From Octopus bimaculoides (taxonomy: Eukaryota): a DNA stretch of 64,000 nt. Under the pieces are notes generated by a model. The model did not search any database, was not told where the DNA came from, and was given only the letters and a program-made list of their open reading frames with translations. The position numbers were made by a program, and so were the translations under genes. The DNA is taken from NCBI RefSeq assembly GCF_001194135.2, contig NC_069000.1, positions 7,931,087 to 7,995,086 of the forward strand, read 5' to 3'. Shown piece by piece: positions 46,601 to 52,600 of this stretch (the first letter of the stretch is position 1; each line of letters opens with the position of its first letter).

Positions 46601-49600
46601 ACTACCAATATTTAAAAAAAAAAGCATTGGTGTCCAGGTATGTTCCTGAAAATATTTCTGTTGCCTGAACAGATATTATTAAGGGTGGTGGATTGGCAGA
46701 ATTGTTAGTGCATCAGGCAAAATACCTTGGGATACTTGTTCTGGCTCTTTACATTATTGAGTTCAAATCCCACCAAGGCTAACTTTGCCTTTCATACTTC
46801 CAGGGTTGATAAAGTACAAATCAAGTACCAAGGTCAATTTAATCAAGTAGCCCCAAACCCACAAACTTATGACATAGTGCCAAGAAACTATTATTATTAT
46901 TATTATTATTATTATCATCATCATCATCATTACTATCGTCGTCATCATCAACACCATCCTTATCATTTATCTCAACCCCTCATTACCACTATTTGTTCTT
47001 TGTAACTTATGTATAGCTGAGTATTTTTTATTATAGATATAGATAGATAGGTATACATATTTTTAAAGATCTCTCAGGCTGACATGCAAATCCAACTGAA
47101 AAAGCAAAAAAACTATGTAGAAATTATAAACTCCTTTCACCTTCTTAAAGATGGACAAGAGGGAGAGAAAGAGTGAGAGAGAGAAAGAGAGAGAGAGAGA
47201 TAAACAGAGTAAAAGAGAGAGAGAGAGAGAAAGAGAAGAGAGGGAGAAGACTAAATAAGAGAATGGAGGTAATTTTAAGCACATGTAAACAATTAAAAAG
47301 TAATAATATTCCAATAATATTTTGCCAACGTACAGCATATCACCTCCTATTGCTGTAATACTTACAATAAAGCAAGTGTTCTGTGTATAATCAATAGAAT
47401 TTATTGAACATTGGAAACGGAGTAAAGTTTTATTATAATCTTAATTCAGTGAAATAGTCAAGTGTTTTTAACATTAAGATAACTGTAGAAAGATAAAAAA
47501 TAGAGAGGTCTAAAAGGGTTTGTATGTTTAACAATGAATCATCAACTTTCAACTTTTTTCAATAAAAGATTAAAATTATGCAAAAAAGCTTACCTTTCAT
47601 GATGGCAGAGCCAATCCTACTTAGCGACTTGGTTGAACCCTTGTTGCTTCCAGACATTGAATTCTTCAGATTCTTTACATCTGACATCGAATATGAATAT
47701 CTTCTGCCTTCGCTTTTTGATAACTTGTTGCACATTGAACCCACATCAGCCATTGAATTTGATCTATTACTTGGGCTTGATTGACTTGTCCTGCTTCCGA
47801 TGTATTTCATATCTGATAAAGAAATGGCTGTTTTAGGTGCACCAAACTCTCTCTGCTGATCATATATTCGATTACTAACAACCATCCCCATATCAATACA
47901 GCTTGATGATAATCCTGGTTTCTGGTGACGAAGCATTTTCGTACTAGCAAGTACAACATCTGCAAAGGTGGCCTTGTTTTGCAGATTGCCAGTGCTACGG
48001 ACATAATAGGCTGGAGGGCATTTATTGGGTGCTGTTTCGGCCAAAAAAGTTGACATACTTTTAGTTGATTGATGTATTTTCTTTCTGGACATGTTTTTTG
48101 TCAATGCTTCTCTGGACGTTTTTGTAGTAGGCAGAGGTTCAGCAGAGGTAAAGATTTTCAAAGTGGGTTTTACCATATCGATGGCAGATGTAGTTTGTGT
48201 TGTAGAAGAATTGCTTATTTCAGACACTGTAGATATTTCATCACTTTCAACTTCTGAAACGGGGGGTAAGCACGATAGTTTCCGTGACGTGAGGTATTTC
48301 ACTTCTTCATAGCTCTCATAATATGTAGACCTTGTCGAAAACCTTGGCTGTTGATGGGGTTGATTCTGATTTTCATAAGATTGTCTAACAGTAGCTTCAA
48401 CATCAATATAAGGGAAATTAGGTGATTTGTCATTAGATTTGAGATCTTCATCACTTGCTACTTCAACAATACTGCCTGAGCTTGATGGTTCCAAATATCT
48501 TTGGAGATGTTGCTGCAATAATTGTTGCTGCTGCAAAACTTTGCTGTCAGTATCCACATTTGTCCCAGACACATCTCGGATGTTGCAGTGTTGCAGAGAA
48601 ATTCGCCGTTGCTGGTCTGGATCTGGGCTGTTGTCTACATGTACATTGTAATTATTGTTTAAAGATGTTGGAAGGGATCGAAATGCTGAGGGTGTTTTCT
48701 CAGCTCTATCAAATTTGATATGAAAATCTGTAGATTTTGATTTTTCTTGGTTGAACCTAGATGGATCTACAATGAGACCGGAATCAACATTAGAAACAGA
48801 ATCATTTTTGGGACATTCAACGACTATCAACTGTGATGGCTTTCCAAAGGGCTGTTGAAATGTGAATTTTTCTTGCTGGGTTGCTAGAAGGTCAACGGGC
48901 GTGCCATATGTGTTTGTTATAGTTGCTTCTTCATAAATATTTTCCATGTTGCTGAGATTAACATCATCAACAGACGAAAGTAAGGTTCTTTCTCCTTGTA
49001 CGGACTGATTCGAAAGGGAAGGAAGGACTGCAAGATCTTCATCAGTATAAGTGTTCAACAAATTCCTGTACTTCATGTCCTTCAATGCTTGGTCTACAAT
49101 GGCATAGGAGTTTCCTAATTTCTTAGATTTTTTTCGTTGAGGTTTCTTTAAACTTTCAACAATCTCAGGTAGGTTTGGAATCCTGCAGTTTTCTTGTAAG
49201 GGTATAGGATCTGTGGAACTTTCTATAAAGATAGGTGGGTTGAACAACTGTTTGAATATAGAAGGTGGTTTCCAGTAATCGGTAATCTGGTCAAGAAGTG
49301 AATTGGAGAGTTTTTCACACTTCTCTGGCACGGATTTTTTATCTTTTGAACACTGAACGTATACTTGTGAGTTGGGCAGCACACCATGCTTGAGTTCCAC
49401 AGAGGTTGCTTTAGGGAGTACTTTCGTCCCCGATGAAAGAGATGCCCAGGAACTTTTGATGTCCTGCTCAGTCGAAAACTTAGAAAAGGTCACACATTTA
49501 CTGCTTTGTGTTTGATCGGTTTTATCTGTATTCAGATTGGAATCAAACCGGGGAAAATCAGTCAACAGCGAGAATTTACTGTTTCTAATGTCAACGAGTG

Positions 49601-52600
49601 AAGTCGTTACTTTCCCACCCACTTGTTGTACCTCACTTGCGAGTTTTTCAACATTTGGGACTGAATAAAATGACTTTTCACCTTTACATTGTTCTGAAAT
49701 CTTGTTACTGACATTTTCCAGCTGTAGAGCTCCACCAGCTTGACGCTTGATCGAGAAAGTCGCAAGACTTTTTGATGAGCCTGTTAATTTTTTTTCATGT
49801 GACTGTGTACTGGCTTGGGAACTCTTTCTTCGGAGAGAACTGGATCTATCTTTTCCTAGGTTTCTTATGTTGGGCATAGACGGAGAGGTTCCAATATCTG
49901 ATTGATGTTTCTTTGTAATAGCCACGACATCTGGTAGAGAATAATACAGCTTGGCAATTTTGGACTGTTTCAAACATTTGCTGTTTGCCTGTTTCCCATT
50001 TTTGCCCTTTGTTGTAGACAATGATACATCACCATACTGGCCCTCTCGAATGGAGCTTGCATGGTTGACATTGCGCTGCAATACATCTAGGTCCGCTGCT
50101 TGTTTAAGGAGTAACAAATAAAGAAATCAATACAGATCACATAACTGTTAACCATTTTTGAACAAGGCACATGAGATTATTTTAATTTACAAAATTGCAA
50201 TAAGAAAATTTGTAAACTTTCAAAAGAAATAACAATAATTGTTTCATTGAGATAGAGAACTCAAACTCACCTAGTACAATAGCAACGATATGTCTACTCT
50301 AGCATTGTAATAAATTTAGTTAAGAAGGAAAGAAAAATGTGTAATTAATGAAAAGTGGCACAACTTTATATTCCACTTATTAAATCTATGAAGAAATGAG
50401 AAAAGCATTTGAGCCAATAGCACATCACATGGAGAGTTTCCTGGAGAGAAACTCACACAGCGCAGAAAATTATACAATATAGTTTTGCAAAAGAAAAAGA
50501 AAGAAAGGAGAAAAAAGCTCATAAATTTTGTTATTGGCAACAATAATTAACAATTTTTCTTCACACAAATTATGGTCAAAGAACTGTACATTACTTTAAT
50601 GATTTCATAGAACAATATAGAAAGAAGAAAATATCAGCAACATCTACTTTTGCGGAACAGTTTAAATATTTCATAAAAAAATCTGCAGTAGATTAAATCA
50701 CTACCTTCATTTGATTTCCTTATTTAACATTATAATGTTATAAGCAGATTTTTATATTGCTAGTGTGTATGCACATCAAATAAAAATCCATATAACTAAC
50801 CATGAATATATTTTTATGTGGTATTTTGTGTGTGTGTGTGTGTGTGTGTGTGTGTGTGTGTGTGTGTGTGAAGAACAGGGACACACAACCAGCAACCTCT
50901 TTCATCTGTTCATTCACAGAAGGGAGCTATAAATTTTTTTTGATTAAAGATTCAAAATATCTCACAGCTGTTGTAAATTCATTTGCTAGATACAATGGTA
51001 AGCCATCTTCCAACCTTCTAACATTCCCAATTGTATTTAGAACAACATTCATGGACAAATTAAACAAAGTTTATCAAGTTTTCAAACAGCTATTTTCCTC
51101 CAGTTGTTTTTAATATTTAGCTCACTTCTCCAAACTAACCCAAACTCATTTCCAGGTTCAATGATCAATGATTCTGTAAAAAAAATGTAACGTAAAAAGC
51201 AGAATCCGAGGGAACTGGCAGTGGTTGCTGTAGGCAAAAATTGTACAATAAAATTCAGGAATTTAAAGAAGTTTGCATGTTGTGAGAAGATGAACCTGAT
51301 GTTTAGAACAAAGCCCATGACTGCAACTGTATATCTTTGTTCTGTTTTATAGAGTTTCCATCAGTTAAAATATAAGTTATATTGTTATATTGAATGTCCA
51401 TGCACTGGGTGACTTTTTATCTGATCAATGCACTCCAAATTGATGTTGTTTCCATTATATTTCTAAGAATGTATCTGTATTTGTATCTCACCTTCCATCT
51501 TTGCACAAAATACTTCTTTCCTAAAACTGAACTCTTATGGAATACCTGATCTGTTTTTTTAAACAGAAGTTCAAGCAGAAAACATCAACTACATCAGTCT
51601 TAGTAACCTAGGAAACAAGCCTACACAATCATAGTCATCTCTTCTAACTACACACACACACACACAAGCATGCACACGCACACACACACACACACACACA
51701 CACACACACACACACGCTTGTTAGCAGACTAAAACCTCAAAGTCATTGTCACATTTCTTGGCTGAAACACATAAATAAATAAAATAAAATGTACTCTACA
51801 AAAAAGTATTGAGTAATTTTTCAGTTTTAAGTTAAATTGCTTTGTTATAACATGATGTATATCAATTGAGCTCTTAATTACCATATCGATTCTATATATA
51901 GACACATCTGCCTATCTATCTACACATGTATGTATGTATTGGGTCATCCCATAAATAATGCATTCTTTTTCAGTTGAACAAGTTAAAAGAGAGTATATTT
52001 TAGATTAAAAAAGAACTTTGTTTATCTTAATTTTGAAAAATAAAAAAGTATAAAAAATCACATTATTTATGGGATGACCCAATGTGTATGTATGTATGTA
52101 TGTATGTATGTATGTATGTATGTATGTATGTTTGTATGTATGTATGTATATAGGCACATATATGCAGATACATAAATAAACTACACATAAATTTCTTTAA
52201 ACGGACAACAAAATTTAGAATTTCAACTGAGATTGATGAAGCTAACCAGAAGTATTAATGAAAAGACAAAAAATCAGAGAAGAAAATTTTAAATATATAA
52301 CCTCATGACAATAAAGAAACAACAGTGAAAAGATCGAAAGAATATGAACGAAAAGAAATCTAAAATAATTCTTATACTCACTGCAACACTGCAACAAAAA
52401 TTGCCTGGTTAGGAAGACATAAAGAAACTAATAGACACAACATTCACACATCAAGTTGTAATTTGACCAGTTTATGATTGACTTGTGAATTCACATTCTA
52501 TTTAAGTGAGATGGTGAATCAAAGATGGAATAGTAAAACTCTGGAAGACAATTGTGAGTGAAGAAAGTGAGTTACAGCTGAACTGCATAAAGATACAACT

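Follow-up and report, generated by a model that had tools for sequence, protein, structure and literature searches.

Nav2/CaV4 channels are the ancestral and poorly understood sisters of the classical sodium channels, and to our knowledge almost nothing is known about their placement or regulation in neurons. Four-domain channels classically dock to partners through the cytoplasmic loop between domains II and III (the II-III linker); in Cav2, for example, this loop contains the synprint site. In chordate Nav1 the linker carries ankyrin-G binding, and in vertebrate Nav1 it is where the channel attaches to the cytoskeleton (PMC6259924). According to the same review, Nav2 genes lack two extra II-III linker introns of Nav1, and a glutamate at the filter position of domain III, giving DEEA instead of DEKA, is the criterion that identifies a Nav2 channel (PMC6259924). 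We analyzed a stretch of 64,000 nucleotides from Octopus bimaculoides (RefSeq assembly GCF_001194135.2, contig NC_069000.1, positions 7,931,087 to 7,995,086 of the forward strand), which we call the window and number from its first letter. The window holds a gene of this type, and a long intron of its II-III linker harbors one open exon of about 2.5 kb that would add 835 residues to the channel. We report that this giant exon is, judged from its orthologs in cuttlefish, a genuine and selected internal coding exon of the Nav2 gene, and that it is probably an optional cassette.

Several described systems resemble this locus in part. Insect Nav2/CaV4 channels (DSC1, BSC1 and AmCaV4) carry the same DEEA filter and the same MFLT sequence as the octopus channel. 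They are far longer than a compact form of about 1,520 residues, through long cytoplasmic regions. A profile search across 1.84 billion representatives detected no sequence similarity between insect Nav2 and the cephalopod insert. The honeybee DSC1 ortholog AmCaV4 comprises 2,120 residues, its III-IV linker is described as containing MFLT, and a splice variant as well as RNA editing have been reported (PMC4969797). Exon 7 of the oyster channel CgNav1 encodes 135 residues of a Pro/Ser-rich segment in the I-II linker and is tissue-specific, with alternative use demonstrated by reverse transcription PCR (PMC5295241). Both the oyster and the octopus exon preserve the frame and add a Ser-rich, phosphorylatable stretch to a molluscan Nav linker. 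The oyster exon is six times smaller, belongs to Nav1 and sits in the I-II linker; furthermore, its alternative use was observed, whereas that of the octopus exon is what we infer. The giant exons of ankyrin-G and ankyrin-B likewise consist of a single very large exon that adds a long unstructured region. They have no sequence relation to the octopus exon, and the octopus insert lacks an ankyrin motif. The idea of an ankyrin-like switchable scaffold, put forward in an earlier, sequence-only reading of this DNA, is an analogy and not a result. That reading had also mentioned a squid Nav2-type cDNA; it exists (Sato & Matsumoto 1992) and is cited as a mollusc DEEA channel in PMC3809514. The literature searched for Nav2 and for sodium channels of cephalopods contained no description of the giant exon. 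As a sequence it is not wholly undescribed, since it is already contained in a public gene model from the cuttlefish Sepia pharaonis (CAE1265172.1).

The giant exon lies within an open frame on the minus strand (47559..50117) that comprises 855 codons from stop to stop, or 852 when counted from the first start codon. The runner-up among the open frames of the 64-kb window has 354 codons and corresponds to the exon for domain IV. Given the stop-codon frequency of the window (0.068 per codon), about 6e-23 frames of this length are expected by chance, and the five remaining frames of the giant exon contain between 28 and 71 stops. Over 48-50 kb the G+C content reaches 0.385-0.40, compared to 0.31-0.34 in the adjoining kilobases. 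The boundaries and splice signals agree with the open exon of 2,502 or 2,505 nucleotides, phase 1 at both ends, that had been proposed (Table 1). The donor following position 47594 (atgaaaG/gtaagc, where a slash marks the exon boundary) is strong and no weaker than the donors of neighboring exons. The pyrimidine tract of the acceptor is broken by purines ('aaaca' ahead of the AG), and here the giant exon differs from the neighboring acceptors. The tandem acceptor is kept across species: octopus has two AGs and cuttlefish has three (ctcaAG/cAG/cAG/gcc), all in frame; this arrangement would allow exon-start length variants of one or two alanines. Because both ends are in phase 1 and the length is divisible by three, skipping of the giant exon keeps the frame.

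The cephalopod comparison envisaged by the earlier reading, a dN/dS estimate included, recovered orthologs in cuttlefish. A collection of 5.8 billion proteins, searched as cluster representatives only, yielded two relatives of the giant-exon peptide at 46-47% identity and 98% coverage (BLASTP), or 50% identity in a MAFFT alignment. Both are open-reading-frame calls on genomic contigs, and every related contig was genomic. The relatives come from Sepia (Acanthosepion) pharaonis, as cluster membership shows, and from a second Sepia-like genome, presumably sepiid, and are 92% identical to each other. Their giant exons measure 2,520 and 2,517 nucleotides, and phases, acceptor and donor (atgaaaG/gtaagt) are as in octopus. 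Protein-guided mapping located the S. pharaonis exons on one strand in the order domain II exon (...DDGQDE), 30.7 kb, giant exon, 31 kb, VQQNSEE exon. On the second Sepia-like contig no neighboring exons were found within 10 kb on either side of the giant exon, the introns being too long.

These orthologs bear on the alternative that the open frame is due to chance, or is a decayed transposon or a pseudo-exon without protein function. Such an origin would fit an insert that has no match in Pfam, NCBIfam or PDB and no homolog outside cephalopods. Between the two cuttlefish giant exons the synonymous divergence (dS) is 0.175 and the ratio of nonsynonymous to synonymous rates (dN/dS) is 0.22. DNA identity across the exon is 85-99% and gaps occur in frame only, while the introns around it show 40-86% identity and many indels. 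Between octopus and cuttlefish the synonymous sites are saturated (proportion of differences, pS, 0.73-0.74), yet at least 835 codons stay open in both lineages. The dN/dS ratio and the chance expectation effectively refute a frame without function. The first 200 nucleotides of the intron past the donor are also about 90% identical between the two cuttlefish, and about 50-80% further out. For the exon encoding domain IV and the C-terminus, octopus and cuttlefish share 98% of the protein and 82% of the DNA sequence, which shows, at the level of sequence, extreme purifying selection on the Nav2 core. With 50% identity compared to 98%, the insert evolves far faster than the channel core and is still constrained.

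Conservation between octopus and cuttlefish runs from the acceptor (AADLDVLQ in octopus, AAGLDVLQ in cuttlefish) to the donor (SAIMK and SVIMK, followed by gtaag). Past the conserved donor the frame closes after 11 codons in octopus and after 3 in cuttlefish. In octopus no methionine occurs in the exon before residue 74, although residues 19-73 show good conservation. Since neither a start nor a stop codon is conserved, the sequence behaves as an internal coding exon and not as a nested gene or a site of internal initiation. A separate transcript, either from a nested gene or from an alternative first exon that puts a giant N-terminal tail on a half-channel of domains III and IV, could be read from the S. 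pharaonis annotation, which divides the locus: CAE1265170.1 reads through the domain II donor, and CAE1265172.1 begins at a methionine inside the giant exon. We regard this as very improbable. Octopus residues 1-73 contain no methionine and yet are conserved (GQY.D.S..KGKN.K...), conservation sets in exactly at the acceptor AG, the phase fits the upstream Nav2 donor, and the stop codon is not conserved. The split models (CAHIKZ030001469.1; L014 36067-36303 and L013 10001 onwards) resemble an annotation break over a 30-kb intron, and CAE1265172.1 starts at an internal methionine because the part with domains I and II is annotated apart as CAE1265170.1. One accession number lies between these two entries, which suggests a further model in the 30-kb intron. 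We conclude from the comparison that the giant exon is a genuine, selected internal coding exon of the Nav2 gene and that, on the same grounds, it is at least as old as the split between octopus and cuttlefish.

The exons around it identify the host gene, by the residues they encode, as a four-domain channel of Nav2/DSC1/CaV4 type. The assignment follows from the glutamate in the domain III filter, TSAGW with its filter alanine in domain IV, LDMFLT in the III-IV linker and the nearest named relatives of the domain IV exon, which are 'sodium channel protein 60E', 'DSC1' and 'sodium channel protein 1 brain-like'. The filter residues D and E of domains I and II lie outside the window and were taken from the ortholog in Argonauta hians ('LLTQDYWEDV' and 'ILCGEWIEPM'). 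The giant exon sits within a 39-kb intron of the II-III linker, between 62125 and 23081. Its insertion point is 46 residues past the end of segment S6 in domain II and about 108 residues ahead of S1 in domain III. A hand count on the Argonauta ortholog gave a linker of about 154 residues without and about 989 residues with the giant exon, close to the earlier estimate of roughly 150 and 980. Membership of the giant exon in a Nav2 gene and its position in the II-III linker thus stand as first proposed, supported by filter, MFLT and neighboring exons. The in-frame skipping junction GAA G/TT CAG (E-V-Q) likewise follows from the exon ends at 62125 and 23081, and it is identical to the junction in the Argonauta model GAB1603263.1. 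That model matches the upstream exon at 98% identity (tblastn). Exon 23081..23020 would be the splice partner of the giant exon, and of the donor at 62125 in the skipping form.

Over 845 residues the O. bimaculoides UniProt model A0A0L8HLX0 (2015) agrees with the window at every position. A 513-N assembly gap is located at about 24.6-25.1 kb, within the intron that leads into the VQQNSEE exon and close to that exon. The first exon of A0A0L8HLX0, at 25167-25481 (minus strand), consists of low-complexity sequence beside this gap and is probably spurious, so that the public O. bimaculoides gene is truncated there. The sequence-only reading had also named a small exon at 25932-26017 (minus strand) as an alternative partner. 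It has AG and GT flanks and leads from phase 1 to phase 0, and could therefore only replace the 23081 exon, never join it. The intron in cuttlefish contains no counterpart of it, none of the gene models includes it, and this proposal was left unsupported.

Table 1. Exons and sequence features of the Nav2-type gene in the 64-kb window (a slash marks an exon boundary).
Feature	Position in window	Strand	Remarks
Giant coding exon, II-III linker insert	47594..50098 (start 50098 or 50095)	-	2,505/2,502 nt, 835 codons, phase 1 at both ends
Tandem (NAGNAG) acceptor AG-CAG of giant exon	50095..50100	-	...ccttaaacaAG/cAG/cgg; 3-nt choice of start
K-x-[YFH]-x-S-x-P sites in giant exon	exon residues 49-55 and 141-147; roughly 49955-49935 and 49679-49659	-	conserved
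Upstream exon, end of domain II S6 and proximal II-III linker, ...RDDGQDE	62305..62125	-	donor phase 1, GAC GAA G/gtatga
Linker exon (V)QQNSEE..., downstream of giant exon	23020..23081	-	62 nt; acceptor phase 1, cacag/TT CAG CAG
Linker exon DDVIMENN...CLPLFITS(R)	19790..19953	-	found by tblastn with Argonauta model
Exon (R)FKCLREFDD...ASSILL, distal linker and start of domain III S1	18993..19134	-	found by tblastn with Argonauta model
Next exon, AFEDIYL...	starts 17076	-	downstream of 19134..18993
Domain III pore-loop exon, ATFEGW	10461..10517	-	filter residue E, not K
III-IV linker exon, LDMFLT	8512..8622	-	MFLT instead of IFM of Nav1
Domain IV/C-terminal exon	6596-7633	-	98% protein and 82% DNA identity to cuttlefish

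We then considered what the insert encodes. It is rich in Ser (15%), Lys (9%), Thr (7%) and Gln (6%), with a net charge of +23. The mean Kyte-Doolittle hydropathy is -0.70 and the highest value in any 19-residue segment is 0.48, so that the insert has no transmembrane segment. In a structure prediction with AlphaFold2 (AF2) the mean predicted local distance difference test (pLDDT) score was 31, every residue scored below 70, and a few short helices were present. Altogether the insert looks intrinsically disordered according to this model, and composition, hydropathy and pLDDT agree with the Ser/Lys/Gln-rich, apparently disordered region without transmembrane segment that had been described. 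The search against Pfam, NCBIfam and PDB sequences returned no match, apart from a sub-threshold hit of the cuttlefish peptide to CUX1_N (Pfam) and a spurious one in PDB (E = 0.27). Remote homologs were found neither by the profile search of the 1.84 billion representatives nor in JGI metagenome contigs. The vertebrate ankyrin motif, searched as [VA]-P-[IL]-A-x-x-E-[SD]-D after the definition in PMC6259924, had zero matches in the octopus and both cuttlefish peptides, again in line with the earlier description.

Conservation within the insert is patchy. Residues 255-354 are about 77% identical between octopus and cuttlefish, and residues 43-80 and 781-834 about 70%. A short motif, S-[LVMFI]-[PASV]-[DN]-[VIM], occurs 8 times compared to 0.13 expected from shuffles, and its relaxed form [ST]-x-x-[DN]-[VIM] occurs 14 times (2.6 ± 1.6 expected). 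Ten copies of the relaxed motif are aligned between octopus and cuttlefish, at residues 53, 73, 145, 166, 510, 710, 732, 759, 781 and 803; the last five of these form a tandem array near the C-terminal end (710-803) with a spacing of about 22-27 residues. Since the pattern was defined after seeing the alignment, the shuffle statistics are generous, but the conservation of position is independent of this choice. Furthermore, the insert contains two conserved K-x-[YFH]-x-S-x-P sites, KLYYSLP and KSF[YH]S[VL]P (KSFYSVP in octopus). We take these sites to resemble the mode-II consensus for 14-3-3 binding. One 14-3-3 dimer could clamp both putative sites, which lie about 90 residues apart. There are also 7-10 [RK][RK]x[ST] sites, among them the invariant KSEGRRYS, and many serines of the basophilic-kinase and CK2 type.

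On this basis, we consider it most likely that the insert serves regulation and docking as an intrinsically disordered region. Spliced between the ...DDGQDE and VQQNSEE exons, it would bring the cytoplasmic II-III linker to about 990 residues, up from about 150. Because it enters in the linker, pore, voltage sensors and gating should stay intact. The insert would form a long flexible arm that can be phosphorylated at multiple sites and carries a multivalent array of motifs. With the exon included, the channel would be linked to partners or brought under kinase control; without it, a compact channel would result. Neurons or other tissues may accordingly make a long isoform of at least about 2,365 residues next to a compact isoform of about 1,530. 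A more specific proposal can be formulated, which we hold to be rather unlikely in its entirety: a coleoid-specific, splice-switchable docking module in which the roughly ten conserved motifs (the pairs and the five-unit array) and the 100-residue island (255-354) would provide multivalent, phosphorylation-dependent binding sites for partners from the cytoskeleton or the synapse, and so anchor or cluster the Ca2+-permeable Nav2/CaV4 channel in particular neurons.

Is the giant exon optional? The public gene models include both forms. The S. pharaonis 'DSC1' model CAE1265172.1 contains an orthologous giant exon that is 50% identical to that of octopus, with phases and neighbors alike, and splices it to the VQQNSEE exon (...SKMSSVIMK/VQQNSEETK...) and on into domains III and IV. 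It differs from the octopus locus in that it is a prediction beginning at a methionine inside the giant exon, with the locus split. In contrast, the Argonauta model GAB1603263.1 (1,530 residues, partial) skips the giant exon (...NLRDDGQDE/VQQNSEERKIDLRNN..., with VQQNSEERK). It belongs to the same family (DEEA, MFLT), the window matches its exons at 87-98% identity and its junction is the skipping form, but the model lacks the 835-residue insert. A compact Nav2 form, as had been claimed, thus exists as a gene model. The 'sodium channel protein 1 brain' cDNA of Heterololigo bleekeri (UniProt Q05973) is presumably compact as well, with a length of 1,522 residues. Weak hints toward regulation come from the interrupted pyrimidine tract of the acceptor and from the 200 nucleotides of downstream intron that are about 90% conserved. 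Taken together, we favor the interpretation that the giant exon is an optional cassette, which would switch between giant and compact channels.

Several points weigh against this interpretation. The models that include and skip the exon come from different species and may both be predictions, made ab initio or guided by homology. For the Argonauta model, the compact squid protein could simply have served as the template. The alignment behind the AF2 prediction was shallow, with three sequences only, and a function in docking and phosphorylation rests on motif patterns defined after the alignment. Finally, no octopus protein (O. sinensis, O. bimaculoides) with the giant exon was present among the cluster representatives of the 5.8-billion collection, a weak negative. 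A search of the same collection with the skipping-junction peptide returned no match and missed even A0A0L8HLX0 and GAB1603263.1, which contain the query. Because the search covers cluster representatives only, such negatives are weak for models with many exons.

The exon might instead be constitutive, coleoid Nav2 always having a linker of about 990 residues and the compact Argonauta model, and possibly the old squid cDNA, being artefacts of annotation or cloning or reflecting a lineage-specific loss. Purifying selection and conserved splice sites fit this equally well, the donor equals the neighboring donors in strength, the sole model that covers the giant exon (CAE1265172.1) includes it, and insect Nav2 orthologs are large too (AmCaV4, 2,120 residues). 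Yet the Argonauta model skips the giant exon in frame, the squid cDNA was a physical clone of presumably compact size, the acceptor is weaker than the neighboring ones and the intron next to the donor shows unusual conservation. The missing O. sinensis and O. bimaculoides proteins also count, weakly, against constant inclusion. We consider constitutive use a serious but on the whole unlikely alternative to an optional cassette.

Two further elements were observed in the introns. A single-copy element of 130 nucleotides at 27535-27664 (minus strand) is 80% identical over 134 nucleotides to S. pharaonis L013 34096-34226 (plus strand; E = 1e-22), and it is collinear in both species, in the stretch that separates the giant exon from the VQQNSEE exon. 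The element opens with TGCATG, a pyrimidine tract and an acceptor-like TTTTAG/CAGGCT. Splicing in phase 1 would lead to a TAG after 13 codons in octopus as in S. pharaonis; the remaining frames are disrupted by an indel. The cuttlefish copy contains a tRNA box-B-like sequence (GGTTCAAGTCCC). The element had no match in Rfam and was not repeated within the loci compared. It may serve as a poison or terminal exon whose use is regulated, or it may control splicing. The second element, at about 62560-62840 (minus strand) in the intron upstream of the domain II exon, has a tRNA-like head (…TAGTGGTTAGAG…GGTTTCGATTCC…) followed by about 150 nucleotides and a T-run. It looks like a tRNA-derived short interspersed element, as far as its layout tells; ARAGORN made no tRNA call there, and no second copy was found in the window or in the cuttlefish loci.

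Cephalopod Nav2 has several II-III linker exons, one of them giant. Since Nav2 genes lack the extra linker introns of Nav1, a conserved linker exon of 835 codons points to a lineage-specific elaboration, and among invertebrates the animals that carry it have the largest brains. Constitutive use would still raise the expected size of the cephalopod Nav2 channel by more than half and correct the fragmented public models. If it is optional, one gene would give rise to two very different channel complexes, a possibility that can be tested through the long and short isoforms and the motif array. Should the docking module hold true, channel anchoring by the linker would have been invented independently, in parallel to the ankyrin-G docking of vertebrate Nav1.

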